This document shows, piece by piece, positions 2,948-42,663 of a DNA stretch of 64,000 nt. Positions within the stretch are counted from its first letter, which is position 1; every line of letters begins with the position of its first letter. This DNA is from Vitrella brassicaformis CCMP3155 (taxonomy: Eukaryota > Protista > Chromerida), in assembly GCA_001179505.1 (NCBI GenBank), contig CDMY01000391.1:1-64000 (forward strand), given 5' to 3'. A model generated the notes under the pieces. That model was not told where the DNA came from and ran no database searches. It worked only from the letters and a program-made list of their open reading frames with translations. The position numbers and the translations under genes were made by a program.

Positions 2948-4512
2948 ATGATGAGCAGGCAACCGGAGCAGCATCAGGAGCAGCAGCATCCCTTCACGTA
3001 CATCTTCGTTGGTCGTCGCACGTTCTGGCTGCTCAGCCTCACAGACATACTGCGGCTGAGAGCCACCTGCACATGGCTCAGGAGTCTCTTCAAAGCGGCC
3101 CAGCTGAGAGATCGGCTCCGTCACTCTGTCGGCTCACAGGCGGGGCTGCGGCGGGTGGTCAACGGACAGCAGGTGCAGCTGGTGCGGTTCGACGATGACC
3201 AGTTCGGCATGTGTGATCTGCTGGCGGCTGTGTGTGTGATGGAGGAGGGAGAATGGGTGGAGATCGGCGAGGTGATTGAGTGGGCCAGCCAGTGCGGCCA
3301 CTGCACACTGCCTGTCAACCTGACGGCAGATGACATCAACGCACACGCCAATATGACGGTAAGGACACACACACAGGGGGGCGGGAGAGAACAGAGAGGC
3401 CTCATTCATTCCTCTCTGTCTGTGTGTGTGTGGTGTAGGCGTATGGATCGTTTCCCCGTGTGTTGGCGCAGCTCATGGTGGTCGGCCGCCATGTGGCCTT
3501 AGGTGACGGCAGCTGCCTGCAGCTGTTCCAGTATGGCAATGGTGAGGTGCGGGCCATCAAGGACCAGGACGAGTTCCGGCTGACCGTCGACCCGCCCCTC
3601 GCCGCCCACCATCTGTATCAGCGGCATCGACTGGAGCATGACCCACCAGTGGCCAGCGACATGCACTTCCCGTCCACCGATGCGTCGGTGTCGTCGTTGG
3701 CCAAGCGCACGATCCTCAGCCACTTACACTTACCTCAGACTCACCAGATCAATCGCACATCGATACGGCTCAACAGGTGACACATCAGTGGCAGCAGTGG
3801 GTGAGAGGGGTGCGTGTTTGATTTTGTGTGTGTGTGTGTGTATATGCGGTTGGTTCAGGCGTGTTGGTGGCGGCCGTCTGGACGGCCTCCTCACCCAGTC
3901 GCCCCACATACCGGTCGCCAGATGTACCACCACACTCGGCTCGGACGGTGGTGTGCGGTCTCTGGTGCTGACCGACAGCAGCCACAACCTCGTCGCGTGG
4001 ATTACTATTGAGGATCAGGGAAACGACAACGGTAAGGACGACAGACAGACAGATCCGCTGGTCAAATCTCATGTGATATCTGTCTGGGCTGCCTGTGCAG
4101 TGGTGGTGTATGTCGTGACGACCGAAGTTCCTGTGTGTGCGAGCGGTGCCTTCAAGGACCGCTTCCCGGTCACCACTCAGCTGGCCCGTGTGGCGCTGGG
4201 TCAAGTGGCGCCATACGTCTTCGACGGCCAAGTAGACGGTGACAATGACGATGATGATGACGGTGCGGACAGGGGAGGGGGAGGGAGACACACACACATG
4301 ATGGCCATGGTGTGGATGGATGGCATTTCTTCTCTGTCTGTGTGTGTGTGGTGTAGATTCCGACAGTCATGGCGGCGGCTGGGATGATATGGACGTCGAC
4401 AGCGACGGAGAGGGCAGCGGAGGTACACACGAAGGGGAGGGACACCCTCACGTCCATCCGCATCACATAGCGTGTGTGTCTATCTGAAGCCGAAGAGGAG
4501 AGCGGCGAGTGA
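2948..4512 (+). CDS. Lineage-specific multigene family member A (F-box-like N-terminal motif, acidic tail); 6 exons, apparently intact
   Basis: Exons read HPFTYIFVGRRTFWLLSLTDILRLRATCTWLR / VLAQLMVVGRH / RRVGGGRLDGLLTQSPH / FKDRFPVTTQLARVALG / acidic tail. GT-AG introns are in compatible phases and TGA lies at 4510-4512. Four paralogues are in the window. Confidence 0.8.
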
Positions 4513-5317: not shown

Positions 5318-5750
5318 CCGACGGCCATGACGAGTGACGATATGGATGACGCATCGGCAGAGGAGGATAGCGACGAGGGTGACGGCGACAACGATGATGC
5401 CGACAGTGGTGACGGTGCGGACAGGGAGGGAGGGACGGAGGGAGACAGGGAGGGAGGGACACACACTCGCGCGAATGGATGGCTAACGTGCCTTCTTTAT
5501 GTGTGTGGTGCAGACGGTGATGGTGGCGATGAGAGTGACCATTTGGATGTCGACAGCAAACACGGCAGCGGAGGTACACAGGAGCGAAGGAAAGAAGGCA
5601 CACACAGAACACCACAGATACCCTTGTCTCGATCCGCATCACATACATTTGTGTGTGATTCTGTGTGTCTTGATGACAGGTGAGATGCATCAGCCGAGGA
5701 GGAGAATGGCGGCGTTGACGACACACACACCAATCATCATTATACCTACA
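5318..5750 (+). pseudogene. Orphan 3' tail exons of family member D
   Basis: DDASAEEDSDEGDGDNDD and DASAEEENG exons match the reverse complement of 40675-41110. No upstream family exons are present. Confidence 0.7.
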
Positions 5751-6339
5751 GGTACGCCGACACCCCTCACACCCCGTGGTGTCTGTCATTGAATTGACCC
5801 CGAACCATTCGTTTCTCTCTTTGTGTGTGTGTGTGTATCCTGCCTGACCGGCTGCAGTAGCAAGTTGTCCGGTCGCCTCGACGCATCGCATAGCTGTCTG
5901 TGCGTAGAGTAGATGAGAGGCTGATGGCCCACCGACTCCGCGACTCCCCGACTGCCGGCCTGCCGGTGTGCATCTCTTTCCCCCACTGTCGCGCCTTGTA
6001 TCTATCTGTCTATCTGTGTCGATAGCCCTCCCTCCTGCTGGCTGCGTGTGACGTATGGTGTCTCTGATCGACTGATTGATGCACACGTGTGTGTGAGGTA
6101 GTTGATCTGTGGGTCGCGTGTGTCTGACTTGCCCCCTCTCTCCATCCACATGCCCATATCTGACGTCCATGGCTGCCTGGCTACTTGGCTAGTTGGCTTC
6201 CTTTGGGGGTGGTGCTGTGTCTCATGGATGGTGTCTTGACGGCTGGTGGGGTGTGAGTATCGACCATGGGTGTGCTTTACTTGTACAGCCTTGTCGCCTG
6301 CACTGTGTCGTGACCGTCATTGAGACGCATGGGCTGCCA

Positions 6340-6770
6340 CCAGTGTGTCTGTGCAGAGGAGAAGTCGATGAGACACAGGGGACAGTTGGAGCTGCTGACA
6401 GTCGACCAAGTGGATGAAGCTATGTGATTGGCTCCACATGAATGTGACAGTTAATTTTGATAGCGCTAGTGCAGTGCATGTGATGCGATAGATACGTCAG
6501 CGCACCAGCCGGTGGCGCGATTTCACTTTTCCTTGGTGGAGTTGAGAGCTCGCAGTTTCCAGCAATTTTCGGCAGCGAGGGTGGTCCAGTGCATTGTACA
6601 GGACCGATTGTTCTTGCCTTTCGGACGGTGGTGCGTGCGGACCTCACTGATTGTCGCTGTGCTCGCCATGAAGAACTGAATGCATGTGCACATTACATTC
6701 ATCGCTCTGTACAATTGCGTGTCCCCGCTTTGGCTGCTCACGGATCGGATCATACATCCTCATGGATTGA

Positions 6771-6804
<34 letters not shown>

Positions 6805-6860
6805 GCTCTCCGCTCTCTCCTTGGTCGCACCGTACCTGGCGCGCACACACAACAAGAGAG
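6340..6860 (+). repeat. Orphan copy of the last exon and 3' flank of the ankyrin locus
   Basis: Reverse complement of 51420-51910 and of 39525-40070 (gaggagaagtcgatgagacacagggg...catgtgatgcgatag). Confidence 0.8.
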
Positions 6861-7379
6861 AGAGACTTAGTGTGTACCCCTCCCTCCTTCGAATGGGTTT
6901 CTTCACCCGGGCATGCATTCCCTGTGCAGTCTGTCTATGTGCAGCTACCTACCTGTCGACGACACTCCTTCCTCGCTGAGATTGACGCCGGCAATGAATT
7001 GGTGGTTCAATGGCGTCAGCAGCACACGTGTGGCAGGTCGCCGTGGGGCCCTCGCCCCGGGCGAACGAATGCCGTGACGCCCTCGGGAAACGGTCGGTTG
7101 AGGGGGCGGTCCATCAGCGCCACCACATCTGACCCAATGGCACCAGATCTCAATTGCCAGATCTGACCCAATACATACAAGGAGAGGAACAAACACATGT
7201 ATTGCACTGCACGGCTGCCTGTCTGTCTGTCTGTCTGTCTGCCTGCCTGTCTGCCTGCCTGCCTGCCTGCCTCCCTGCCTCCCTGCCTGTCTGTCTGTCT
7301 GTCTGTCTGTCTGTCTGAGGGTCGCGCTGCGTCCATTATTCCGTCGTCTGCAAATTTGCGAGACGACCGCCGAACGAAG

Positions 7380-10300
7380 GGCGTGTTACTCACCACGTAT
7401 GCGCTCCTCATCGTCGTGGCGTTCATTTACTCTGCAGCAGCGGCGACTGCTCGCGACGAGTACTGTGAGGGCACGGACTGCCCTGCCGATGGTGGGCGAA
7501 TGCACGTGAGATGGAGATCCATGGCGCACACATCAGTGCTAGCTGGCCCGTATCCGGCTGTCCGACATCGTATCTGTCGACTGTGTGCAGGTGCGTCGTT
7601 CCTCGGCGGCGGTCAAGAGATCCAGGCGGTCAAGAGATCCGGTACCCACACACAGATGGGTGTGGGGTGAAGACCTGTGCGTCCATCCATCAAATGTGCG
7701 TGTGCGTGCAGGAGCTGAGTTGTCCATGATGGAGCAGCACCTCCTGACCGGAAAGAAGTCACTCCAGTCGGCCATCAAGCTCCGCACTGAGGCCAATAAA
7801 GTCACCAGCGCCGCCAACGATTTGATGGTCGCAGCCAACACAACCCTCGATAACCTCCAGACGCAGCTGAATGTCCTTACCGGTATGCAGGCAGGGAGGC
7901 ATCCACACTGATCCATCCATCCATCCATCCATCGAGTTCGCATTGTCATGCGTCCTGTGTCGTCTTGCCGAATGGATGAATGTGACAGGCACTTTCGCAA
8001 CGGCTGTCAAGACCGGCCATTCCGACTACGAGAAAAGGCATCCCCAAGGCCAGTGGGTGGTGGATGTATGGGAATATCACTCTCTCTGTATGGCTCTTCT
8101 CCTCCCTGCAGATGAATGCCAGAAAGACAAGGACTGCGCAACGACGGGCAAAGAGGGGTTCTGCTTCGAGCACGTCGACCGACACAGGAAAACAGAAACA
8201 TACAAGGAGGACAAGAACAACCCGCTGTATGCACGTCGCTGCCAGGCAAGGGTCACCTATGCTGTTGGTTCTGTTGGTTCGGATGCAACTCATCGGCCTT
8301 GCTGTGTGTGGTGTCCTTTGCCTTTGCAGACGAAGGGCGATCGTAAGGACTACTGCGGGGACAGCGGGGACAAGCATTCGTCGGTCTTTTCATGTGTTTC
8401 CCCTGATTGCGAGCCCAAGAAGCCCAAGAGCAAGCCGTGCAAATGGGGTCTGGAGTGCAAAGACGACGTTTGCGTGTAAGTGGCCGACTCGCTTGTGCAT
8501 GCACATGTGCACCTGCGAATGAATCGACAGGTCGGATCGGTTTCATACCTTTCTCGAGGGGCGCAGCATCAAATCCACCGAACCCGGACGTTAGCACGCA
8601 AACAACACATGAACGAATGAATCGCATGAAACGTGGACCTTTGCTTGCCCATATGTGATATCCCACGTGTGTGCAGGCAGATGCTGGTTCGCGGAGCAAG
8701 CGAAACGTAACCACCAGAAGCATTGCCCAGGTGAGTCTTGGCTATGCCGTCTGCTCATGTCTCTATCTCTTTCTCTCCCTCTCCCTTTCTCTCTCTCTCT
8801 CTCTCTCTCTGTCCATCCATCGTTCCTAACACCAGAGGGCCAGATCTGTGCACTCACCCGCAAGAGGTCTCACAAGGGTGCTGATGCTGTCCGAAGCTGC
8901 AGGACTATGTCAAGTGGGCCGTTGAGGGCGAGTGCGTGCCGTTTGTCGATCGGGAGTCCCATTGTAGCGAGACAGACTGCCTTCCCCCAAAGGCTTGCCA
9001 GTGCGCTTCGGCCGCAGCGAACCCTATCCCGGTGACGAGTATGTCTGCGCGGCGGATCGTTTCAACTACTGCGACGGCAAAGGACCATACAAACCCTCGG
9101 GTACTCGACAGGTGCATATCCATCCATCCATCCATCTATCCATCCAGTTGGCATTTCCTGTGTCTCGCCTTGTCTGAATGCAGTTTGCCCTGTCCAGTCT
9201 GGGCGTCTCGCTTCCACACCGGCCGGCAAACATCACGGTCCGTAACTCACGCAGAGCAGCGTACATGTGTGTGGGGGTGTACGTATCCTTGTGTGTGTGT
9301 GTGTGTGTGTGTGTGTATACAGGCAAATGTGAGCTGACGGTGACGACAGATGAGGGTCTGGACCGCCGCCACTACAAGCACACGTGTCCGGACGGCCTGG
9401 TCTGCCTGATAACCAACGAGTACCACGGCTTCGACGGGGACACCGATGTAGGCGTGTGTATCAATGCGGCCGACGTCGAGAAGCTTTGCCGCAAGAGGGA
9501 CGACTACGACCCAAAGCAGGAGCGCCAGCCGTTCGCGGTTGCCCAGTACTACGATTTTCAACACACAGAGTGCGAGTACGTCTGGGTGGACTACGTCGCC
9601 TCCCGCAAGACAAGAAGGCCCGTCTGGGAGCGGGTCGACCGCTCCGGGCCGGATTGGTTCGAGTTCTGCGCCGCCAAGGACATCACCCATGAAACCCTCG
9701 AGTTCACACGTACGCACGCGTAGTGCTTTATACACACAAACACACCGATGCACCTGCACGCGAAATGGTCCTTCCCTCTGTTCTTATTCGTACGCGTGTG
9801 TTGATTGTGTGCAGCTAGTGACAAGTGCGCCGAGTACACCAAGGAATTCGCCAAGAAGTTCGCCGCCTAACCAAGCCCTCGAGACCACTGCTCGGATTCC
9901 CCTCGGCCTCTGCGGTGGACTCTGCGCATCATCGATTCTGCACAGGGCCCGAGACCAAGAACCAGCCATGCGGCCCGCCCTCCAAGACGTGCATCTGCAA
10001 CCGCGAAGGAGACCAATGCAAGACCAAGGTTCGTGGGTAATTTACGCGTCGATCTCTGTGTGGCTGGCTGGCTGGCTGGCTGGCTGCCATGTTATGTTTG
10101 TGTTGATATGTTTGTTTACGTCTGTGCAGGAGGGCTTCCAGGCCGATATCGATGCTAAGACCGCTCGTGAGAAAAAAGAGAAACGCTCCCGCGCCGAACA
10201 TGAACTCGAAAACTACGATGGAGGTGAGTGCACTGCAAATACACACAGGGGCCACATCCATGCGGGCGTGTACACATGTGTCTGTCTGTCTGCATGCGTG

Positions 10301-10537
10301 TGTGCTGTGCGAGCAGGCACCTGCTTCTATTTCACCCACGGTGGGTCGGTGAGTCAGAACTGCGGCGGCGGACTGGTGTGTGTGGTGGGCACGCGCACGC
10401 CAGAGGAGGGGAGACGGTCGGGGAAGTGCATGCACAAGGAGAAGGCAAAGGATAAATACTGCCATGGCGCGCCGGTCAAAAGGGACAACTATGGCCGATA
10501 TAGCTGCCAGCCGTTCAAGGAGGGCACGGTAGCCTGA
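7380..10537 (+). pseudogene. Multi-exon Cys-rich secreted protein gene, arm-1 copy with three 1-nt deletions
   Basis: Hydrophobic LLIVVAFIYSAAATA leader followed by Cys-rich exons (DECQKDKDCATTGKEGFCFEH; GKCELTV...HTCPDGLVCLI; GTCFYFTHGG...CGGGLVCVVG). Relative to the arm-2 copy, single bases are missing at about 8889, 8984-8988 and 9870 (the last creates TAA). Start codon not resolved. Confidence 0.7.
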
Positions 10538-10639
10538 CTGATGATTAGAGCAAGGAGGGGCGGGAGGGAGGGAGGGAGGGAGGGTACACTTAAGCGACGG
10601 CTTTTCTCTTTTCTTTTGTTTTTCGTCATACCCTCTACA

Positions 10640-11000
10640 CCATTTCTTTCAGACTGCAGGCGGGATACACACAGAGGCACGGACGGACACAGAGGGGTTG
10701 ACACACACAAGGGGGGACACACAGAGTTTTCATTATGGTCATTTTGTTTGTAATTATGTGATTTGTGTGATCCCATCGTCTGTCTGTCTGTCTGTCTGGG
10801 GTGGGTGGTGTTGGCCGCGCACGTCCATGGCCTGGCTGCAGCGTTGCACTCATTTCACGGATGGATGGACCGTTTCCTTTGTCCTTTCCATCAAGCGCTC
10901 CAAACGACCGACCACATTATATTGGCTGGCACAGATCAATCAATGAATGAAGGGGGACTCTCCATGCCTCGACTTAGTTAGCCTTTCAGAAACACCACAC
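10640..11000 (+). repeat. About 340-bp repeat, copy 1 (copy 2 at 12536-12865; inverted copy at 33795-34165)
   Basis: Shared gacacacacaagggggg...gcgctccaaacgaccgaccacattatattggctggcacagatcaat...cgacttagttagcctttcagaa. Confidence 0.85.
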
Positions 11001-11483
11001 GCGAACATCAACTATCTCATCGGCAGTCAGAGAGCATCCCCCACTCACTCACTCAACTCACTAATCGAGAGCCTGCTGGGTGTGAGGTACTTGCCTGTCC
11101 GCCTGTCCCTCTGTCTGTCTGTCTGGTGGGCGTGTGGTGAGCGGGGGGAGGAGAGGTGCTGAGACGTGCAATGCCATGCGCTCGACACGTGTGGTGTGTG
11201 TGTGTGGCACTGTGTGCATGGGAATCGTTGGCACTGAACGCCTCTCCTCATCCATCCATCCATCCATTCATCCATTGGTCCATCCATTGTCCATTGGCCC
11301 ATTCGCGTGTTCCTGCGGGATTCCGTCGGACCGACACACAAGGCCCTCAGGCATGAGCGCGTGATGGTCATTTATTTCACAGCCAGGCTGGTCCAAAGCA
11401 AACCATGCGGCTTGGCTGAAGAAGGCGGCCTCCCCGCTGTTTACAACAACTTCCTGGCCATCGAGCGTCGAACGGTAGAGAGA

Positions 11484-12270
11484 ATGATGGCGGGCAGATC
11501 TGCGATGTTGGCGTTGCTGTTTGCGCTCATTGCCCTCTGCGGCCCATTGGCGGAGTGCGAAGAGATCCACACCGAACACGGCCTCGGTAAGTCCAGACGC
11601 CATTGGCCATATATTGACGGGGCGGGGTGAGATCCGATGGACGGATGCCCTCCATGTGTGTGGCGGAATGGATGGATGGATGTGCAGACGCAGACGCCTG
11701 CGAGGGAGAGGACTGCGCCTTCGGCGGAGAATTCGCCGCGGGGTGAGGGAAATGAATGGATGGATGGATGGATGGACAGATCCCTCTTGGTATGTGTCTG
11801 TGTCCATCGTGTGTGTTTCCAGCGGGCGGACGGAATGCTACCTGGTGAGCGCAGCACCATCTTGCTGCGAAACAACAGCCGATAGATGGATGGGTGTGTG
11901 GTGTGTGGAGGGTGATGTTGTGGGTACTACTGGGTTTAGGGTGCGAGGGAGGTGGCCAAGGCTGTGCCGCGGGAGGGTTCTGGCCGGCTGGAAGAGGCCT
12001 TCTGCCCCGAGGTTAGAGAATTTTGCGTCTTCAACGCCAGAAGGTTCACCTCTGACATAAACTACTACCTCATCGTACGTATGGGAAGGATCATGCATGC
12101 ATGCCATGCAGACAAAGAACATCAATCGTCAGTCCAGTCAGCGTTGTTTGTGTGTTTTCATGCCTGCCTGCCTGCCTGTGTGCCTGTAGGTCGGCACGGA
12201 CTATAAAGTACTAGAAGACTACGATGGTATCCCGCGGTGCGGCTTCAGGACACGGCTGGAATTGAAATGA
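11484..12270 (+). CDS. Small secreted Cys-containing protein (about 133 aa, 5 exons), arm-1 copy
   Basis: Signal peptide MMAGRSAMLALLFALIALCGPLA, then DADACEGEDCAFGG / GRTECYL / GAREVAKAV...FCPEVREFCVF...YYLI / VGTDYKV...ELK*. Splice phases 1, 2, 0, 0 are consistent in both copies. Confidence 0.7.
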
Positions 12271-12535
12271 GCAGGCTGGTACGCGCGACACGACGAAAGA
12301 TGTGTGTGTACGTGTGTGTACGTGTTGTTGTGTGGTGTGTCCCTTCTCTCCCATCCCTTGCCACGCAGCCCACACACCGCACCCCGGCACACCACGGCAG
12401 CATTAGATAGCCGAGTAGGGAACCTGAACACCTCAACCGGTACAGGTACGTATCCATCCATCCATCCATCCATGCATTCACACGCACCAGCCCATATCGT
12501 GTCGGTGCATCCGTTCACACATTCACGTGACGTGA

Positions 12536-12865
12536 GGGATACACACAGACACACGGACACAGAGGTGTTGACACACACAAGGGGGGGACACACAGAGTTT
12601 TAATTATGGTGGTCATTTTGTTTGTCATGTGATTTGTGTGATCCCATCGGCTGTCTGTCTGGTGTGGGTGGTGTTGGCCGCGCACTTCCATGGCCTGGCT
12701 GCAGCGTTGCACTCATTTCCTGGATGGATGGACCGTTTCCTTTGTCTTTTCCATCAAAGCGCTCCAAACGACCGACCACATTATATTGGCTGGCACAGAT
12801 CAATGAATGAGTGAGTGGGGCCTCTCCACGCCTCGACTTAGTTAGCCTTTCAGAACACCAGACGC
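12536..12865 (+). repeat. About 340-bp repeat, copy 2
   Basis: Direct repeat of 10660-11000. Confidence 0.85.
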
Positions 12866-13084
12866 AAAATGTCAGCCAGCGAACCACACCACACCACACT
12901 ATACTATGTGTGTCTTCCCTCCCCTCCCACACTCACGCACCTCTCCCTATCAACACCCCCAGCCATCCCCTCCCTCCCTCCCTCTCTGCTAACTCCCATA
13001 TTCAAGTGTGCCGATCACTGTCACCCTCTTAGTGCTGTCCTCCTCGCCACACACAGTGAAGCCCTCCCCTCCCCCCCCCACACA

Positions 13085-18628: not shown

Positions 18629-20282
18629 ATGCAGCAGCAGCAACAGGAGCAGCAGCATCCCTTCACGTACATCTTCGTTGGTCGGCGCACCTTCTGGCTG
18701 CTCAGCCTCACAGACATACTGCGGCTGAGAGCCACCTGCACATGGCTCAGGAGTCTCTTCGGAGCGGCCCAACTGAGAGATCGGCTCCGCCAGTCTGTCG
18801 GCTCACAGGCGGGGCTGCGGCGGGCGGTCAACGGGAAGCAAGTCCAGCTGGTGCGGTTCGACGATGACCAGTTCGGCGTGTGTGACCTGCTGGCGGCTGT
18901 GTGTGTGATGGAGGAGGGGGACTGGATGGAGATGGGCGAGGTGATTGAGCTGGCGGGGCAGTGCGGCTACTGTGAGCTGCCTGTCATCCTCACGGCAAAT
19001 GACATCAACACACACATCAACAAGACGGTAAGGCACACACACAGAGGGGCGGGAGGGAACAGGGAGGCCTCATTAGTCATTCTCTGTCTGTCTGTCTGTG
19101 TGGTGTGGTGTAGGCGTATGGATCGTTAGCTCGTGTGTTGGCGCAGCTGATGGTGGTCGGCCGCCACATGGACTTCGGTGACCGCAGACGCCTGCAGATC
19201 TTCCGCCATGGCAATGGTGAGGTGCGGGCCATCGAGGACGAGCCCGGCTTCGAGCTGATCGTCGACCCGCCCCTCGCTGCCGGCCATCTGTATCAGCAGC
19301 ATCGACTCCTGCATGACCCACCAGTGGACAGCCGCATCTCCTACTGGGTCATCATCGGCAGATGAGGGTCGAGCTATTTAGCTCTCCCGACCACCATAGC
19401 CTCAGTGTCGTCGTTTGCCAAGCTCATGGTCCTCGACCACTTCGACAAGACTCACCCGACCAATCTCACAGTGACATATCTCAACAGGTAAGACACCAAT
19501 GGCACCAGTGGGCGAGAGGGGTGCGTGTTTGATTGTGTGTGAGAGAGATTGTGTCTGATTGTGTGTGTGTGTGGTTTGTTCAGGCGTGTTGGTGGCGGCC
19601 GTCTGGATGGCCTCCTCACCCAGTCGCCCCACACACCGGTGGCCGGATGCACCACCACATTCAGCTCGGACGGTCGTGTGCGATGGCTGGTGCTCACCAA
19701 CAGTAGCCACACCTTCGTGGCGTGGATTTCCATTGTGGATGAGGGAAACGAGAATGGTCAGGCTGACAGACATGCAGGTCTGCTGGTCAAATGCCACATG
19801 TGTCTTTCCTTTCTGGCTGTCTGTCCGCAGTGGAGGTTGTCGTTCAGACCACCGAGGAGCCTGTGCGTGAGAATGGCGCTTTCAAGGACCGCCTCCCCAT
19901 GACGACTCAGCTGGGCGGTGTGGCGCTGGGGCCAGGACTTGCAGTCGTCTTCGACGGCCAAGTATATCAACTCAAGTATCAACTTGAGCCATCAGAGGGG
20001 GAGGGGGATGACGGGGATGATGGTACGCGCAGACAGAGGGAGGGACGGATATTGGTGGATTGATGAGTATGTGACGGGCCTCGCCTGTGTGGGGTGCAGA
20101 CAGCGATGATGGCGGTGGTTCGGATGATATGGATGATGGCAGCGGAGAGGACAGCGAAGGTACGCAGCCAGACACACGACACGCAGGCCCCCACGTCGAC
20201 TTGCGTCACATTCTGTGTGTATGTGTGTGTTGTGCCTTCGGCAGGTGACGGCGGCGTAGCTGAGGCGGAGAGCGGCGACTGA
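18629..20282 (+). pseudogene. Family member B with in-frame stop
   Basis: Same exon set as member A. TGA at 19363-19365 (GGC AGA TGA) where member D has GGC AGA TGG; the frame resumes afterwards (SVSSFAKLMVLDHF). Confidence 0.75.
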
Positions 20283-32385: not shown

Positions 32386-33309
32386 ATGGGCGTTCAACTC
32401 AGCGCCCCTCTGTGCCCCTGTGCGAAGCGAAGTGGCAAACAGCGGAACCGTGAAGACGAAAGCTTCATTTGCAGCTGCTTCCTGGTGCAGGCGGATCGGT
32501 CACGAAATGACTCATCCATCCGCTCATTCGTTCATCCCGGCGGCTTCCTGTGTGTGTGTGTGTCCTCTCTCTCAGACGCATGGCTACTTCCTCAAGGCCC
32601 GGTGTGTGCACATCGACTGTCCGGACGACTCCTCATGGCGAGATCTCGAGCCCGTCGTCAGGGAGGAGCTCGAGAGGCAGCGGCAGCACCGCATCGATTG
32701 CATCGCCCAGGCCCCTGGCCGCATCCACAGAATCAGAGAGCGGTATCGGCCGAGGGACGCCGAGCTGTTCGACTGGTCCGACGGCCGGTGGCTGCACGAG
32801 GCCTGCATCGATGTGCTGTCTAGGAGTGGCTGGGAGGCTAAGGGGAGAGGGAGGGCGGTGGTCGAGCAGCATAGAGGCGGGCGGTTCCCCGTCGTGTCGA
32901 TGCCGGTCTTCAGGTAGGCACACGGTGAGTAAGTGAGTGAGGTGCCGGTGTGTCGTGTGTCCTTGGTTGCCTCACTCAGCGATGAGTTTCTCCGGCGATT
33001 TGCCGATGAGCTGACATACTTCCGCTCGCTTGGGCTGCACACGACCAAGTGAGCAAAGCAGAGCAGAGGACGGCTGGATGAGGTCCAGGCAGACAATCCG
33101 TCTGTGTCTGTCTGTGTGTGTGTGTGTGTGCCTGTAGGCCGAACTCGATGAATGACGGTGGCGTGCTGATGCGTGAGATGGGCATGGACGCCTTCTTTGA
33201 TGGGCTGCTGGCTGACGTCCTCACTCCCACAGCCCACCGGCTGCACCTGCTGCCGCCAGACGCCACGCTCGACTCCCACAAGACATTTACCGTCGTCTAT
33301 CAGCACCCA
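32386..33309 (+). CDS. OGFOD2: OGFOD2-like 2OG-Fe(II) dioxygenase, 5' part (runs into gap)
   Basis: SMPVF-S-DEFLRRFADEL..F...RPNSMNDGGVL.EMG.D...LDSHKTFTVVY matches the OGFOD2 family pattern RPNTMNNYGVLL.ELG...LDSHRAFVVKY. Confidence 0.8.
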
Positions 33310-33609: not shown

Positions 33610-34354
33610 CTGTGTGTGGCGAGGAAGACAGCAGTAAGAGGGTGACAGTGATCGGCACACTTGAGTGAGAGAATGAGCCGGGAGGGAGGGAGGCAGGGAG
33701 GCAGGGGTGTTGATAGGGGTGCGTGAGTGTGGGAGGGGAGGGAAGACACACATAGTATTTATAGTGTGGTGTGGTGTGGTTCGCTGGCTGACATTTTGCC
33801 ACAGTGTGGTGTTTCTGAAAGGCTAACTAAGTCGAGGCGTGGAGAGGCCCCACTCACTCATTCATTGATCTGTGCCAGCCAATATAATGTGGTCGATCGT
33901 TTGGAGCGCTTGATGGAAAAGACAAAGGAAACGGTCCATCAATCCGTGAAATGAGTGCAACGCTGCAGCCAGGCCATGGACGTGACGTGCGCGGCCAACA
34001 CCACCCTCGACAGACAGACAGACAGACAGCCGATGGGATCACACAAACCACATAATTACAAACAAAATGACCATAATTGAAACTCTGTGTGTCCCCCCCT
34101 TGTGTGTGCCAACCCCTCTGTGTCCGTCCGTGTGTCTGTGTGTATCCCGCCTGTCTGAAAGAAATGGTGCTACTCGGCTATCTAATGCTGCCGGGGTGTG
34201 CCGGGGTGCGGTGCGGTGTGTGGGCTGCGTTGCATGGCAAGGGATGGGAGACAAGGGACACACCACACAACACAACACGTACACACACACGTCACCCACG
34301 TCACACACATCTTTCGTCGTGTCGCGCGTACCAGCCTGCTCATTCGAGCTCGTA

Positions 34355-35243
34355 TCAGTCTGTGAACTTCATTTTCGCCCCTGTCTGGCAGCAGCACTTT
34401 AGTCGGGCATCTCCTTGTGTTTCATAGTCCGTGCCGACCTACAGGCACACAGGCAGGCAGGCAGGCATGAAAACACACAAACAACGCTGACTGGACTGAC
34501 GATGTTCTTTGTCTGCATGGCATGCATGATCCCTCCCTTACGTACGATGAATGCGTAGAGCTTCTCCTTGAAGAAGACCTCTGTGGCGTCGAACAAGCAT
34601 TTCTTTTTTTGCTCGAGGCAGGTGACCTCTATCAGCCGGCCAGAACCCTCCCGCGCGCGCGACACAGCCTTGGCCACCTCCATCGGCTCCTAAACCCAGT
34701 AATACCCACGACATCACACACCACACATTCATCTATCGGCTGTTGTTTCGCAACGAGATGGTGCTGCACCCACCAGGTAGCATTTCCTCAGCTCCCTGGA
34801 AACACACACGATGGACACAGACACATACCAGGAGGGATCCATCCATCCATCCATCCATCCATCCATCCATCCATCCATTTTCCTCACCGGCTGGGCGCCT
34901 GTGGTGTCTGCGGCGTGTGTGTGAGAGTGCGTCGTGGGGCGAGGGTGGAGGGCGGTTGGGGTGCGGTCCCGACGGCGAATTCTCCGCCGAGGGCGCAGTC
35001 CTCCCTCTCGCAGGCGTCTGCATCTGCATCTGCACATCCATCCATCCATTCCGCCACACACATGGAGGGGATCCGTCCATCGCATCTCACCCCACCCCAT
35101 CAATATATGGCCACTGGCGTCTGGGACTTACCGAGGCCGTGGAGGCCGTGTTGGGTGTGGATCTCTTCGCCCGCCGCCAATGGGCCGCAGAGGGCAATGA
35201 GCGCAAACAGCAACGCCAACATCGCAGATCTGCCCGCCATCAT
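34355..35243 (-). CDS. Small secreted Cys-containing protein, arm-2 copy with a P/T-rich insert
   Basis: First 23 aa identical to the arm-1 copy; DADACEREDCALGGEFAVGTAPQPP...PSR / ELRKCYL / EPMEVAKAV...TCLEQKKKCLF...YAFI / VGTDYE...KFTD*. Confidence 0.7.
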
Positions 35244-35537
35244 TTTCTCGCTACGGTATTCTCGACGTTCGATCGGCCAGGAGGTTGTTGTAAACAGCGA
35301 TGACCAGACCTTCAGCCAAGCATGGTTTGCTTTGGACCAGACTGGCTCGGGAGGCCAGCAGCGCTCCCACAGCACTAGCTGTGCTCGGAAGTGCAGTGCA
35401 TCCGGCCGCGGGCGACAGTACAGTGTGAGTGCGCGTTGTGGTGCAGAGGACGGCTGGGTGAGGTCGAGGCAGTCTGAGACAATCGGTCTGTGTCTGTGTG
35501 TCTGTGTGTCTGTCTGTCTGTCTGTGAGTGCCTGTAG

Positions 35538-36159
35538 GCCGAACTCGATGAATGACGGTGGCGTGCTTAAGCGTGAGATGGGCATGGACGCCTTCTTCGG
35601 TCGGCTGCTGAGTGACGTCCTCACTCCCACAGCCCACCGGCTGCACCTGCTGCCGCCAGACGCCACGCTCGACTCCCACAAGACATTTACCGTCGTCTAT
35701 CAGCACCCAATGGTTGGTATGTGTTTGTGTGCGTGTGTATGCCCATCTGTCTGTCTCTCTACTTACTGTGGATATATGTCCGGTTTGGCTCACACCGTGT
35801 GTGTGCCTGTGTCATCTGTGTCATTCAGGGCGACGTTGACCTGGCGCCCCGCTTCGACAACGCAGTGAGTGAGTGGGGAGGAAGAGAGACGGTCACCATT
35901 CATTGAATGCATTGCTATGCTATGGGATGCCATTCGCCGGATGGTTTGGTTGTTGTCCGCTCTCTCTGTTTGCCGCCAGGAGGTGACACTCAACGTCAAC
36001 ATTGCCGGCGAGTTCACAGGGGGCGACTTGACCTTTCTCGGGCCTGACGAGGCGCTCGTGCCTGTGGGGCCATCTGAGAGAGAGGGCGACAGGCGCGCTG
36101 TGACGGTGGCACAGCGGCCGGGCATTGGGGTCGTCCACTCGGGATACGAGCGGCACCAG
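35538..36159 (+). pseudogene. OGFOD2: 5'-truncated OGFOD2-like copy; HxD motif reads RxD
   Basis: Begins in the intron before the RPNSMN exon. Exons GDVDLAPRFDNA / EVTLNVNIAGEFTGGDLTF...GVVHSGYERHQ; CGC at 35850-35852. Confidence 0.7.
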
Positions 36160-36240
36160 GCGAGTTGGGACGCCCCTCTCCCAGCCGTGCTGTGTGTACT
36201 GTGTGTGTCTGGATGGATGGATTGATGGTCAGGCTCAGAA

Positions 36241-36540
36241 NNNNNNNNNNNNNNNNNNNNNNNNNNNNNNNNNNNNNNNNNNNNNNNNNNNNNNNNNNNN
36301 NNNNNNNNNNNNNNNNNNNNNNNNNNNNNNNNNNNNNNNNNNNNNNNNNNNNNNNNNNNNNNNNNNNNNNNNNNNNNNNNNNNNNNNNNNNNNNNNNNNN
36401 NNNNNNNNNNNNNNNNNNNNNNNNNNNNNNNNNNNNNNNNNNNNNNNNNNNNNNNNNNNNNNNNNNNNNNNNNNNNNNNNNNNNNNNNNNNNNNNNNNNN
36501 NNNNNNNNNNNNNNNNNNNNNNNNNNNNNNNNNNNNNNNN
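36241..36540. other. Assembly gap (300 N)
   Basis: Run of N. Confidence 1.
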
Positions 36541-39260
36541 GCCCTCCTTGAACGGCTGGCAGCTATATCGGCCATAGTTGTCCCTTTTGACCGGCGCGCC
36601 ATGGCAGTATTTATCCTTTGCCTTCTCCTTGTGCATGCACTTCCCCGACCGTCTCCCCTCCTCTGGCGTGCGCGTGCCCACCACACACACCAGTCCGCCG
36701 CCGCAGTTCTGACTCACCGACCCACCGTGGGTGAAATAGAAGCAGGTGCCTGCTCGCACAGCACACACGCATGCAGACAGACAGACACATGTGTACACGC
36801 CCGCATGGATGTGGCCTCTGTGTGTGTTTGCAGTGCACTCACCTCCATCGTAGCTTTCGAGTTCAACTTCGGCGCGGGAGCGTTTCTCGTTTTTCTCACG
36901 AGCATTCTTAGCATCGATATCGGCCTGGAAGCCCTCCTGCACAGACGTAAACAAACATATCAACACAAACATAACATGGCAGCCAGCCAGCCACACATTA
37001 CCCACGAACCTTGGTCTTGCATTGGTCTCCTTTGATGCTGCAGATGCACGCCTTCTTGGACGGGCCGCATGGCAGGTTGGCCGTCTCGGATCCTGTGCAG
37101 TATGCGGGCTTGGAGTCATACAAAGAGGGCTGGGGGAATCCGAGCAGTGGTCTCGAGGGCTTGGTGTAGGCGGCGAACTTCTTGGCGAATTCCTTGGTGT
37201 ACTCGGCGCACTTGTCACTAGCTGCACACAGTCAACACACGCGTACGAATGAGAACAGAGGGAAGGACCATTTCGCGTGCAGGTGCATCGGTGTGTTTGT
37301 GTGTATAAAGCACTACGCGTGCGTACGTGTGAACTCGAGGGTTTCATGGGTGATGTCCTTGGCGGCGCAGAACTTGAACCAATCCGGCCCGGAGCGGTCG
37401 ACCCGCTCGCAGACGGGCCCCCTTGTCTTGCGGGAGGCGACGTAGTCCACCCAGACGTACTCGCACTCTGTGTGCTGAAAATTGTAGTACTGGGCAACCG
37501 CGAACGGCTGGCGCTCCTTCTTTGGGTCGTAGTCGTCCCTCTTGCGGCAAAGCTTCTCGACGTCGGCCGCATTGATACACACGCCTACATCGGTGTCCCC
37601 GTCGAAGCCGTGGTACTCGTTGGTTATCAGGCAGACCAGGCCGTCCGGACACGTGTGCTTGTAGTGGCGGCGGTCCAGACCCTCATCTGTCGTCACCGTC
37701 AGCTCACATTTGCCTGTATACACACACACACACACACACACAAGGATACGTACACCCACACACACATGTACGCTGCTCTGCGTTAGTTACGGACCGTGAT
37801 GTTTGCCGGCAGGCGTGGAAGCGAGATGCTCAGACGGGACAGGGCAAACTGCATTCAGACAAGGCGAGACACAGGAAATGCCAACTGGATGGATGGATGG
37901 ATGGATGGATATGCCTTCGTCGAGTACCCGAGGGTTTGTATGGTCCTTTGCCGTCGCAGTAGTTAAAACGATCCGCCGCGCAGACATACTCGTCACCGGG
38001 ATAGGGTTCGCTGCGGCCCCAGAGAGGGCGCACTGGCAAGCCTCTGGGGGGAAGGCAGTCTGTCTTGTTACAATGGGACTCCCGCTCGACAAACGGCACG
38101 CACTCGCCCTCAACGGCCCAGTTGACTTAGTCCTGCAGCTTCGGATCAGCATCAGCACCCTCGTGAGACCTCTTGCAGGTGAGTACGCAGATCTGGCCCT
38201 CTGGCGTTAGGAACGAGGGATGGACAGAGAAAGAGAGAGAGAAAGGGAGGGGAAGAGGAAGAGAGAGAGACATGTGCAGACGGCATAGCCAAGACTCACC
38301 TGGGCAATGCTCCTGGTGGTTACGGTGCTCTCCGCTTCGCTCCGCGAACCAGCATCTGCCTGCACACACGCGGGATATCACATTTGGGCAAGCAAAGATC
38401 CACGTTTCATGCGATTCATTCATGTGTTGTTTGCGTGCTAACGTCCGGGTGCGGTGGATTTGATGCTGCGCCCCTCGAGAAGGGTATAACGACGATCCGA
38501 CCTGTCGATTCATTCGCAGGTGCACATGTGCATGCACAAGCGAGTCGGCCACTTACACGCAAACGTCGTCTTTGCACTCCAGACCCCATTTGCACGGCTT
38601 GCTCTTGGGCTTCTTGGGCTCGCAATCAGGGGAAACACATGAAAAGACCGACGAACGCTTGTCCCCGCTGTCCCCGCAGTAGTCCTTACGATCGCCCTTC
38701 GTCTGCAAAGGCAAAGGACACCACACACAGCAAGGCCGATGAGTTGCATCCGAACCAACAGAACCAACAGCATAGGTGACCCTTGCCTGGCAGCGACGTG
38801 CATACAGCGGGTTGTTCTTGTCCTCCTTGTATGTTTCTGTTTTCCTGTGTCGGTCGACGTGCTCGAAGCAGAACCCCTCTTTGCCCGTCGTTGCGCAGTC
38901 CTTGTCTTTCTGGCATTCATCTGCAGGGAGGAGAAGAGCCATACAGAGAGAGTGATATTCCCATACATCCACCACCCACTGGCCTTGGGGATGCTTTTTC
39001 TCGTAGTCGGAATGGCTGGTCTTGACAGCTGTTGCGTAAGTGCCTGTCACATTCATCCATTCGGCAAGACAACACAAGACGCATGACAATGCGAACTCGA
39101 TGGATGGATGGATGGATAAGTGTGGATGCCTCCCTGCCTGCATACCGGTAAGGACATTCAGCTGCGTCTGGAGGTTATCGAGGGTTGTGTTGGCTGCGAC
39201 CATCAAATCGTTGGCGGCGCTGGTGACTTTACTGGCCTCGGTGCGGAGATCTGGTGCCAT
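36541..39260 (-). pseudogene. Cys-rich secreted protein gene, arm-2 copy lacking the signal-peptide exons and carrying a premature stop
   Basis: Near-identical to 7783-10530. A 631-bp 5' deletion; TAA at 38127-38129 where arm 1 has TAT. Confidence 0.7.
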
Positions 39261-39566
39261 TGGGTCAGATGTGGTGGCGCTGATGGACCGCCCCCTCAAC
39301 CGACCGTTTCCCGGGGCGAGGGCCCCACGGCGACCTGCCACACTGTGCTGCTGACGCCATTGAACCACCACTTCATTGCCGGCGTCAATCTCAGCGAGGA
39401 AGGAGTGTCGTCGACAGGTAGGTAGCTGCACATAGACAGACTGCACAGGGAATGCATGCCCGGGTGAAGAAACCCATTCGAAGGAGGGAGGGGTACACAC
39501 TAAGTCTCTCTCTCTTGTTGTGTGTGCGCGCCAGGTGCGGTGCGACCCAAGGAGAGAGCGGAGAGC

Positions 39567-39604
<38 letters not shown>

Positions 39605-40674
39605 TAGACAGACAGACAGACATGCATACAGACAGACAGACAGACAGATCAATCCATGAGGATGTATGGTCCGATCCGTGAGCAGCCAAAGGGGGGAGAC
39701 GCAATTGTACAGAGCGATGAATGTAATGTGCACATGCATTCAGTTCTTCATGGCAAGCACAGCGATAATCAGTGAGGTCCGCACGCACCACCGTCCGAAA
39801 AGCAAGAACAATCGGTCCTGTACAATGCACTGGACCACCCTCGCTGCCGAAAATTGCTGGAAACTGCGAGCTCTCAACTCCACCAAGGAAAAGTGAAATT
39901 GCGCCACCGGCTGGTGCGCTGACGTATCTATCGCATCACATGCACTGCACTAGCGCTATCAAAATTAACTGTCACATTCATGTGGAGTCAATCACATAGC
40001 TTCATCCACTTGGTCGACTGTCAGCAGCTCCAGCTGTCCCCTGTGTCTCATCGACTTCTCCTCTGCACAGACACACTGGTGGCAGCCCATGCGTTTCAAT
40101 GACGGTCACGACACACTGCAAGCGACAAGGCTGTATAAGTAAAGCACACCCATGGTCGATACTCACACCCCACCAGCCCTCAAGACACCATCGATGAGAC
40201 ACAGCATCACCCCAAAGGCAGCCAACTACCCAGCCAGGCAGGCAGCCAAGGACGTCAGAAATGGACATGTGGATGGAGAGAGGGGGCGAGTCAGACACAC
40301 GCGACCTACAGATCAACTACCTCACACACACGTGTGCATCAATCAGTCGATCAGAGACACCATACGTCACACGCAGCCAGCAGGAGGGAGGGCTATCGAC
40401 ACAGATAGATAGATAGATACAAGGCGCGACAGTGGGGGAAAGAGATGCACACCGGCAGGCCGGCAGCCGGGGAGTCGCGGAGTCCGTGGGCCATCGGCCT
40501 CTCATCTACTCTACGCACAGCTATGCGATGCGTCGAGGCGACCGGACAGCTTGCTACTGCAGCCGGTCAGGCAGGATACACACACACACACAAAGAGAGA
40601 AAAGACTGGTTCAGTCAGGGTCAATTCAATGACAGACACCACGGGCTGTGAGGGGTGTCGGCGTATCTGTAGGT

Positions 40675-42663
40675 TTAATGACGATTGGTGTGTGTCGCGT
40701 CAACGCTGCCATTCTCCTCCTCGGCTGATGCATCCTCACCTGTCATCAAGACACACACAATCACACACACACACACACACACACACGTGTGATACGGATC
40801 GAGACAAGGGTATCTGTGGTGTTCTGTGTGTGCCTTCTTTCCTTCCCTCCTGTGTACCTCCGCTGCCGTGTTCGCTGTCGACATCCATCTCGTCACTCTC
40901 ATTGCCACCATCACCGTCTGCACCACACACATAGAGAAGGCCCATTATCGATCCATTCACGCGAGTGTGTGCCCCTCCTTGCATCCCTCCCTGTCTCCCT
41001 GGCTCCCTCATCCCTCTGTCTGTCCGTCCACTCACCGCTATCGTCACCATCGTTATCGCCGTCACCCTCGTCGCTATCCTCTTCTGCCGATGTGGATTGA
41101 CATTGAGGCATGTGTGTATACTGACTGTGTGTGCTTTCCTTCCTTCCTTCGTGCGTACCTCCGCTGCCGTCTCCATCGCTGTCGTCATCCATATCATCCC
41201 AACCGCCGCCATGACCGTCGGAATCTACACCACACACAAAGACAGAGAGAGAAGAAATGCCATTCATCCATCCACACCATGGCCACCATATTTGTGTCCC
41301 TCCCCTGCCCGCACCGTTGTCATCGTCGCTGTCATCGTCTACTTGGCCGTCGAAGACGTATGGCGCCACTCGTCCCAGCGCCACACGGGCCAGCTGAGTG
41401 GTGACAGGGAAGCGGTCCTTGAAGGAACCGCTCACACACGGCACAGGTGCCTCGGTGGTCCAAACGTCAACAAACACTGCAGACAATCAGACAGAAAACA
41501 CTGATGGCATTTGATCACCACCTGAGCTGTCTGTCTGTCAGCCTGACCGTAGTCGTATCCCACATCCGAAATGGCAATCCACGCGACGAAGTTGTGGCTG
41601 CTGTCGGTGAGCACCAACCGTCGCACACGCTCGTCCCGGCTGAGTGTGGTGGTGCATCCGGCCACCGGTGTGTGGGGCGACTGGGTCAGGAGGCCATCCA
41701 GGCGGCCGCCACCAACACGCCTGAACCAATCACACACGCCCCTCTTGCCACTGATGCCATTTGTGTGGTACCTGTTGAGATATATGAATGTGCGATTGGT
41801 ATGGTGAGTGTGGTGGAGGTGATCGAGGATCACACGCTTGGCAAATGACGACACCGACGAATCGGTGGACGAGTTACCGTACGACACCCATCTGCCGGTG
41901 TGGCCTCGTAGTCGATGCGGCTCCGCACTGGTGGGTCATGCTGTAGTCGGTGCCGCTGATACAGATGGCCGGCAGGGAGGGGAGGGTCGACGGTCAGCCG
42001 AAAACTAGGAAGGTCCCTGATGGCCCGCACCTCATCGTTGGCACGGCGGAAGATCTGCAGGCGGCTGCCGTCACCGAAGTCGATGTGGCGGCCGACCACC
42101 ATCAGCTGCGCCAACACACGAGCTACCAACAGATACGCCTACACCACACAGACAGACAGACAGACAGACAGACAGGCAGAGAGGAATGAGGTCTCTCCGC
42201 TCTCCCCCGCCCCTGTGTGTGTGTGCCTTACCGTCTTGCTGGCGTGTGTGCGAATGTCATCTGCCGTGAGGTTGACGGGCAGCGTGCAGCAGCCGCACTG
42301 GCTGGCCAGCTGCAGCACCTCAGCGACCTCGTCCCACCTCTGCTCTTCCATCATCCAGATGGCCGCCAGCAGCAGCTGCGCCCCGACCACCGACTGAGTG
42401 TCGAAGGCCAGCAGGGTGTCCAGTCGGGTGCCGTCAGCGAGGCGAATGCGATCCAGTGAGCGGTTGAGGCGATGGCGGAGGACCTCGGCAGGGAAGTCGA
42501 CCTTGCTGAAGAACAGGGCCGACTTTCTGATGTTGCCGAGGTCCTTGACGTTGTGCAGCTCATCGCGCTCGTCCCGATAGACGACGTCCAGGACCTGGCC
42601 GTTGATGGCGGGCGATGCCTCGTCGGTGCTCTTGATCTCGACCTTGCTCTTGACCGCACCCAT
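40675..42663 (-). pseudogene. Family member D (distinct MGAVKS N-terminus), frameshifted
   Basis: Family exons present. The frame changes near 41900 (DYEAT... versus GRWVSYGNSSTDSSVSSFAK), consistent with a 1-nt deletion. Confidence 0.7.

Follow-up and report, generated by a model that had tools for sequence, protein, structure and literature searches.

Two copies of a gene in the alga Vitrella brassicaformis are nearly identical in their leader and last intron and strongly diverged in the exons on either side of that intron, which raises the question of what lets the coding sequence change faster than the non-coding sequence beside it. Vitrella is a coral-associated alga, sister to the apicomplexan parasites and among their closest free-living relatives. 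The copies, genes A and B, lie in opposite orientation within the first 64,000 nucleotides (nt) of contig CDMY01000391.1 of strain CCMP3155; this whole stretch is referred to below as the window. An original prediction made from the letters of the window had read the pair as a small, diversifying secreted family. Two C-terminal patches of the encoded protein diverge 3-8 times faster than the adjacent introns, with the reading frame and the cysteine scaffold kept, and this contrast between patches and introns is far beyond chance. The answer favored here is that A and B belong to a fast-diversifying, Vitrella-only family of probably secreted proteins in which the change most likely stems from diversifying selection, or divergent selection between paralogues, for new binding surfaces, a reading to which we give a probability of about one half.

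Both genes have consistent intron phases, GT-AG boundaries at every intron and open frames totaling 396 coding nt in A and 504 nt in B (exon coordinates in Table 1), and the encoded products are six-cysteine proteins of secreted type, about 130-170 residues long. The spliced models agree with deposited proteins. P0001 (CEM09002.1), found through the open frame around exon 4 in an exon-by-exon search, corresponds to the model of A from the third methionine on; P0002 (CEM09016.1) corresponds to that of B, again with a deposited start at the third methionine and with an 81-nt insertion included. The junction between exons 3 and 4 is independently confirmed, because a paralogue described below, copy E, lacks intron 3 and carries the two exons fused in frame. 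As had been claimed, the first 23 residues of A and B are identical, and the cysteine scaffold is kept in two open reading frames. The insertion in exon 2 of B is C/CA-rich and codes for 27 Pro/Thr-rich residues in the deposited protein; it looks like exonised intron-like or microsatellite-like sequence. Microsatellites of the (GGAT)n or (CCAT)n type recur at the same positions in introns 1-3 of every copy and differ in copy number (e.g., 11667-11680, 11754-11778 and 34830-34880).

DNA searches and exon-wise protein searches of the CCMP3155 genome (72.7 Mb, 1064 contigs) place the family at five loci, of which A, B, D and E are intact and C is broken, and one further intact copy, M, comes from a metagenome. 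Copy D (contig C678) has 459 coding nt and its model equals P0003, while copy E (contig C448) has 435 coding nt and equals P0005. Copy C (contig C416) carries three breaks, all inside the variable patches: exon 4 has lost 1 nt in a cysteine codon, exon 5 is frameshifted, and a TGA replaces the last cysteine codon. Copy M, with 441 coding nt and canonical splice sites, lies on the 6751-nt contig k147_4905090 of ENA ERZ893784 (L025). That contig matches several separate parts of the window, joined in a more compact order, at only 74-93% identity, and M therefore belongs to a different, though related, genome; the ERZ893784 metagenome thus contains a relative of the sequenced strain. Copies C and M were treated exon by exon, C being read with N or X at its breaks and left unrepaired, and full-length analyses used the deposited proteins only.

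Beyond these copies, searches of sequence databases found no relatives. A HMMER profile of A and B, leader included, returned five matches among 1.84 billion proteins, namely A, B, D, E and P0004, a 44-residue read-through of exon 1 called on the metagenome contig that carries M and the sole member of its cluster; no match came from Chromera or any other organism. A word search of proteins returned A and B only, and no metagenome contig of the Joint Genome Institute (JGI) contained an exact 25-nt pattern from the leader. Pfam has no family for any exon, for P0001 or for P0002 (E<=10 for exons and full protein; E<=0.01 for P0002); the exon-4 piece of D was scanned one base out of frame, and D as a whole is covered by the profile search. 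UniRef labels the product of B (P0002, UniRef100_A0A0G4F9H5) ‘Phospholipid scramblase’, a name that was rejected, as no Pfam scramblase domain is found at E<=0.01. By these sequence comparisons the family is restricted to Vitrella, has no name in the databases and is a member of no named family. A literature search found nothing of such kind described for chromerids and returned only the genome paper (PMC4501334).

The rate contrast was measured in the close set of A, B, C and M, which gives six pairs. The variable part (V) consists of V1 (28 codons), covering the loop between the fourth and fifth conserved cysteines and the strand region after it, and V2 (21 codons plus the stop), covering the region around the sixth cysteine and the tail. 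Exon 1 is 97-98% identical across the set and single introns are 83-98% identical. DNA identity falls to 56-75% in V1 and, depending on the alignment, to 56-74% in V2, and 3-6 insertions or deletions (indels) per pair fall in V. For A and B themselves, V1 is 56% and V2 60% identical in DNA, with 28% amino-acid identity over both, and intron 4, which separates the patches, shows 2 mismatches over 107 aligned bases and two indels of 4 nt each. The original prediction had rested on this comparison of a scarcely changed last intron with highly diverged flanking exons. Its description of the pair holds, and the contrast recurs once copies C and M are added: in all six pairs V is 56-75% identical, compared with 87-94% for the pooled introns (5.6-12.6% divergence). 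When the four copies are aligned together, the sites of V need at least 0.76 changes each on average, those of introns 0.18, those of the constant mature exons 0.24 and those of exon 1 0.05.

Which copies have accelerated is informative about the cause. Private changes were counted as singletons among the four taxa, with indels excluded and with small counts. Copy B shows 16.0% private change in V versus 2.3% in its introns (p = 3e-7, about 7-fold), and copy A shows 7.2% versus 2.5% (p = 0.027, 2.8-fold). In M the corresponding values of 8.8% and 5.6% do not differ significantly, and neither do the 4.0% and 5.6% of the broken copy C, whose private V changes differ from those of B (p = 3e-4) and from those of the pooled intact copies (p = 0.006). 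Judged by pairwise distances only, C did not stand out from M as the slower copy; the singleton count distinguished the two.

This distribution bears on a purely mutational account, in which V1 and V2 would mutate fast at all codon positions through multi-nucleotide events, template switching or error-prone repair, with selection only purging changes that break the frame or the scaffold. Several features of V are those expected of such a process. Silent and replacement distances are both high there under a one-omega model (omega being the ratio of nonsynonymous to synonymous distance, dN/dS), 21 of the 34 codons that changed between A and B differ at two or three positions, transitions per transversion number about 0.65-0.9 as against 1-2.5 in introns, and indels are frequent. 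A mutation hot spot should also hit C, however, and the lack of any V excess in that copy favors selection over a hot spot. The intron lying between the two patches is unaffected as well, and no donor or template for the patches of B exists elsewhere in the assembly: whole-assembly searches for silent donor cassettes, at both the DNA and the protein level, matched only B itself and copy A. We therefore consider a local mutational process improbable as the explanation.

The intact genes are under constraint. Among A, B and M there are about ten coding indels, with lengths of 3, 6, 6, 9, 9, 12, 15, 24 and 81 nt, and all are multiples of three, an outcome with a chance of about 2e-5 under a one-third expectation. 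Intron indels (lengths such as 1, 4, 4, 6, 11, 12, 16, 17 and 28 nt) show no preference for multiples of three, and coding indels of 1 and 2 nt occur in copy C only. These observations speak to the idea that the family is simply being lost, with B on its way to becoming a pseudogene like C and the divergence of V amounting to drift in a dispensable tail. That C is broken three times, always inside V, would fit such a decay, as would the high omega of the constant mature part (0.5-2) and the small size and species restriction of the family. Drift, however, cannot exceed the neutral rate, and V in B changes 7 times faster than the introns of B. No stop codon interrupts A, B, D, E or M, and B has even gained a cysteine pair. 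For A and B, the frame-preserving indels together with the kept cysteines led us to reject the pseudogene reading, and relaxed constraint as the cause of the V divergence across the family is very unlikely.

Gene conversion is a more serious competitor, and several observations suggest that it acts here. Sites at which the close set splits two against two occur in runs that support different pairings: three sites in exon 3 join A with C and B with M, four in the constant part of exon 4 join A with B and C with M, and three in V1 join A with M and B with C (runs test, p = 0.04). Of the non-coding sequence, intron 4 is the best conserved in the three genomic copies A, B and C: 8 mismatches were counted in 325 compared bases, and 68 in 765 when introns 1-3 were compared (Fisher p = 7e-5). 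Private changes in intron 4 number 1 in A, 0 in B, 2 in C and 13 in M, whereas in introns 1-3 M is as close to A and B as A is to B. The intron 4 paralogues within one genome are thus more alike than they are to M, which fits a prediction of concerted evolution. As an RNA element intron 4 was not recognized: it has no Rfam family, and the sole match in the region is a sub-threshold MIR398 at 10696-10792. A CATGCATGCATGCC run near 12096-12112 within the intron resembles TGCATGCA, a promoter motif of apicomplexans.

Taken to its limit, concerted evolution alone could produce the pattern. The copies would be older than their introns suggest, conversion would homogenize leader, introns and untranslated regions (UTRs) and fail across V1 and V2 because mismatches there block heteroduplex formation, and the patches would show the true age of the copies under ordinary or weak purifying selection, with nothing favoring new variants. 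Besides the mosaic of splits and the behavior of intron 4, this account draws on the one-omega maximum-likelihood (ML) fits, in which V has a high synonymous distance (dS) and omega is at or below about 1 for A-C, A-M and C-M, and on the share of alignment columns with three states, 23 of 125 in V versus 2 of 354 in introns. It also draws on silent differences from D and E, which rise from the 5' to the 3' end of the gene and point to conversion at the leader end too: the fraction of shared residues encoded by a different codon is 9% in exon 1, 22-25% in exons 2-3, about 40% (up to 43%) in the constant parts of exons 4-5, 52% in V1 and 66% in V2.

The patches of A and B do not look old, however. 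Only 1 of their 13 shared V residues is encoded by a different codon, compared with 11 of 21 for A and D (p = 0.011), and third codon positions are the least changed: V differences at first, second and third positions number 25, 23 and 14 for A-B and 13, 20 and 28 for A-D. These two features identify the A-B patches as young. Within the young clade, recoding of shared residues affects 2% in exon 1, 8-11% in exons 2 and 3 and the constant parts of exons 4 and 5, 10% in V1 and 23% in V2, so that the silent rate of V1 equals that of the neighboring constant exons. Copy A nevertheless has only 28% of its V residues in common with B, less than with D (46%) or E (39%), which are much older; such a combination suggests that amino acids were replaced in a burst, chiefly in B, and does not fit ancient patch lineages. 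Copy-correction alone also appears insufficient because a neutral patch has no reason to escape correction, and the intron that separates the two patches, 115 nt long beside about 70 nt for each patch, is the best-homogenized part of the gene. On balance, concerted evolution as the whole explanation is rather unlikely. The leader exon itself shows almost no silent change, as the 2% of recoded shared residues against 8-11% in the other exons, and the 9% relative to D and E, illustrate; the cause is constraint on the nucleotides themselves or a preference of conversion for the 5' end.

A number of results, the substitution ratios among them, weigh against selection for new binding surfaces. By the Nei-Gojobori method, the proportions of nonsynonymous and synonymous differences (pN and pS) between A and B are 0.45 and 0.34 in V and 0.087 and 0.037 elsewhere. 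Pairwise ML omega in V is 1.7 for A-B, 0.7 for A-C, 1.2 for B-C, 0.4 for A-M, 1.1 for B-M and 0.9 for C-M, and likelihood-ratio tests on the six pairs never place it (0.37-1.7) significantly above 1. The one-omega model puts synonymous distance in V at 0.5-1.0, against 0.04-0.15 in the constant exons, and for A-B separate silent rates for V and the rest fit better than a shared one (p = 0.004). The original prediction had expected dN/dS above 1 in exons 4-5 and had named a ratio at or below 1 with high dS as the contrary outcome; the values obtained lie close to the latter and do not amount to a clean pass. For A-B, dS can remain low under a two-class mixture in V (p = 0.30) at the price of an omega of 8 or more, and this mixture is not distinguishable from the alternative; since nothing else allows a low dS, dS in V is not pinned down. 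Nonsynonymous distance (dN) in V is 3-16 times the neutral (intron) distance and about 1 relative to silent sites inside V. Changes polarized to the B branch comprise 12 replacements and 2 silent changes, which is not above a neutral ratio of about 4:1. Relative to D and E, third positions are most diverged in V and omega is 0.02-0.27 with saturated dS, so on a long time scale the patches appear to be constrained. The evidence comes from six sequences and some 48 codons. Finally, the contrast between patches and introns is partly made by copy-correction of the non-variable parts, and if conversion erased intron differences in A and B, their true neutral branch would lie nearer 5.6% and only B would be clearly accelerated. 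The case for positive selection is therefore suggestive, not proven. Of the earlier idea of a diversifying secreted family, what stands is an annotated, probably secreted, unnamed Vitrella-only family on a cysteine scaffold, with patches that outpace introns; positive selection is the part left unproven.

The features of the proteins suggest how such selection might act. By a heuristic reading, the leader begins with basic residues, continues with a hydrophobic core of 12 residues (residues 8-19, mean hydropathy 3.1-3.2) and ends in small residues ahead of an acidic, His-rich mature end, and by the same heuristic no hydrophobic stretch follows the leader in the deposited sequences, so that no membrane anchor is predicted. 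The proteins probably enter the secretory pathway. Plastid targeting was considered and appears unlikely, the residues after the leader being strongly acidic and unlike a transit peptide. Six cysteines after the leader are invariant in A, B, D and E and present in M, and B and D each have one extra pair; the six probably form three disulfides. Kept motifs in A, B, D, E and M are C-E-x3-C-A-x-G-G-E, CYL, C-x-F and an I followed by V-G-T, and the loop between the fourth and fifth cysteines ranges from 6 to 17 residues across the family. The stop codon falls at a conserved TGAGC motif in the same place in A, C, D, E and M; exon 5 of B has two additional cysteines beside the sixth and ends five codons ahead of this ancestral stop.

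Structural models add detail at low confidence. AlphaFold2 models A with a predicted local distance difference test (pLDDT) score of 35, and D, from four sequences, with a pLDDT of 51 and a predicted template modeling (pTM) score of 0.47. In the D model, the conserved motifs are placed in strands; confidence is low in the loop between Cys4 and Cys5 and in the C-terminal part, which correspond to V. The conserved motifs (CYL, C-V/L-F and Y-L-I / V-G-T) probably form a beta-strand core, and a disulfide-bonded beta core presenting two variable segments serves as a low-confidence working model. A Foldseek search of the PDB with the weak pLDDT-51 model of D gave a best E of 0.77 and a template modeling (TM) score of 0.2, and the ESM Atlas gave no usable match.

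In the mechanism we propose, the hydrophobic leader would precede a domain that spans about 100 residues and is held together by the six conserved cysteines, with V1 and V2 as the segments free to vary. After duplication, the intact copies would have swapped residues and gained or lost whole codons in these segments faster than neutral DNA changes, copy B diversifying most strongly, and selection for new binding surfaces, formed by the loops, would be the driver. The leader exon, introns and UTRs would have stayed alike because the copies are young and gene conversion keeps correcting them. The data show the structure of the genes, the size of the family, the rate contrast, the conservation of frame and scaffold, the mosaic history and the absence of acceleration in broken copy C. 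Secretion, the disulfides, the loops as binding surface, selection as the driver and any role in extracellular recognition or defense are what we infer from these patterns. A link to toxins, effectors, defense or mating had been suggested earlier, and nothing connects the proteins to any of these. If selection does drive the patches, Vitrella would secrete proteins engaged in some molecular contest or recognition system.

The evolutionary signature is already known from conopeptides and other secreted cysteine-rich families; the family itself is an orphan. For cone-snail peptides, selection versus a mutator has been debated, and a mutator was once proposed. Conopeptides undergo accelerated, mainly non-synonymous substitution in the mature peptide (PMC10561478). 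Like conopeptide genes, the Vitrella genes combine a conserved signal exon (here 2% silent change against 8-11%) with a hypervariable cysteine-framework region in which the cysteine codons are kept, and their non-coding DNA is more alike than the variable coding part. They have no relation to conotoxins in sequence or fold (no Pfam family; profile matches only from Vitrella), reside in a phototrophic alveolate and not in a venomous animal, number five or six members and vary in two patches only. They also show no sign of a propeptide or a short released peptide; the latter is argued against by conserved cysteines spread over the whole region of about 100 residues, and the whole domain seems to be the product.

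In genes of the major histocompatibility complex (MHC), peptide-binding exons are old and introns are homogenized by recombination or gene conversion. The Vitrella genes resemble this pattern in that introns and flanks are more alike than the putatively selected patches, the non-selected parts are mosaic and silent sites near the patches appear elevated. Unlike the MHC case, the copies are paralogues and not alleles, and the A-B patches are young (1 of 13 residues recoded) and not ancient lineages. In Plasmodium, the rif, stevor and pir genes have a signal-bearing first exon, one or more conserved introns and a hypervariable later exon, with ectopic recombination between paralogues. The Vitrella family shares the apicomplexan lineage, this exon-intron arrangement and recombination between paralogues; it differs in having no homology to those genes, no transmembrane segment, no sign of switching or mutually exclusive expression and very few copies, and its host is an alga that lives freely. 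In bivalves, two reports describe the mussel antimicrobial and cysteine-rich peptides myticalins and CRP-I as multigene families confined to one lineage, in which a conserved signal is combined with a hypervariable cysteine-rich mature part (PMC5577615, PMC10138031), to which the Vitrella family has no homology and from which it differs in a much larger mature protein. Defensin-type and knottin-type folds likewise give no sequence family in Pfam and no fold match, although the pLDDT-51 model is too weak to exclude a fold relation.

A broader arrangement can be imagined, in which conversion keeps leaders, introns and flanks uniform in many unrelated secreted cysteine-rich families across the Vitrella genome and selection drives their surface patches apart. 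This would yield a germline-encoded repertoire for extracellular recognition (microbial defense, settlement or gamete recognition) and possibly reflect the ancestral architecture of the parasites' variant surface families, and we regard it as a speculative and quite unlikely extension. More immediately, a small, clean family with four intact genes, a dated pseudogene control and an environmental copy offers a test case in which selection, gene conversion and local mutation can be separated.

Genes A and B each occupy the inner end of one arm in an inverted segmental duplication; the arms are about 7 kb long and, when one is reversed, 90-98% identical outside the gene (Table 1). The long open reading frames neighboring the genes in the duplicated arm have no Pfam match.

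Table 1. Positions in the window of genes A and B, their parts and the repeats around them.
Feature	Position	Strand	Remarks
Duplication, left arm	5352-12418	+	Inverted segmental duplication; gene A at inner end
Duplication, right arm	34170-41092	-	Inverted segmental duplication; gene B at inner end
Gene A	11484-12270	+	Five exons; inverted partner of gene B
Gene A exon 1	11484-11586	+	Start codon, signal-peptide-like leader, first acidic N-terminal residues; phase 1 donor
Gene A exon 2	11688-11742	+	(DA)n, C-x4-C motif, GGEF
Gene A exon 3	11823-11844	+	22 nt; ends in invariant CYL
Gene A exon 4	11940-12074	+	
Gene A exon 4, constant part	11940-11990	+	78-90% identity among A, B, C, M
Gene A patch V1	11991-12068	+	Cys4-loop-Cys5 and strand region after; in-frame indels
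Gene A intron 4	12075-12189	+	Between V1 and V2
Gene A exon 5	12190-12270	+	
Gene A exon 5, constant start (VGTDY)	12190-12204	+	93-100% identity among A, B, C, M; VGT invariant in family
Gene A patch V2	12205-12270	+	Contains Cys6; stop codon 12268-12270; in-frame indels of 6-24 nt
Gene B	35243-34355	-	Five exons; inverted partner of gene A
Gene B exon 1	35243-35132	-	9-nt in-frame duplication relative to A
Gene B exon 2	35029-34888	-	81-nt in-frame Pro/Thr-rich insertion just before donor site (34888-34968)
Gene B exon 3	34795-34774	-	
Gene B exon 4	34689-34546	-	Constant part 34689-34633; V1 34632-34546
Gene B exon 5	34438-34355	-	Constant part 34438-34424; V2 34423-34358; stop codon 34357-34355
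Repeat R	12536-13056	+	Downstream of gene A
Repeat R, other copy	10638-11005		Upstream of gene A
Repeat R, other copy	34169-33610		After gene B

A repeat of 340-520 nt, R, follows the 3' end of every family copy, including C, D and M, and also lies ahead of A. The duplicated unit is therefore the gene together with R. Outside the window, R occupies L022 3689-4435, L020 6172-6317 and, on the metagenome contig, L025 5318-6044. Gene B is in addition bracketed by a 267-nt direct repeat (33063-33309 and 35443-35709, 88% identical). A further repeated sequence, about 1.1 kb long, has at least five copies in the window, which run in either direction and are 74-87% identical (3218-4234, 18887-20022, 41340-42400, 44843-45854 and 49728-50765). 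It adjoins a family member on the metagenome contig (L025 1820-2970) and on C678 (L020 5-320) as well, and is probably another co-duplicated gene family.

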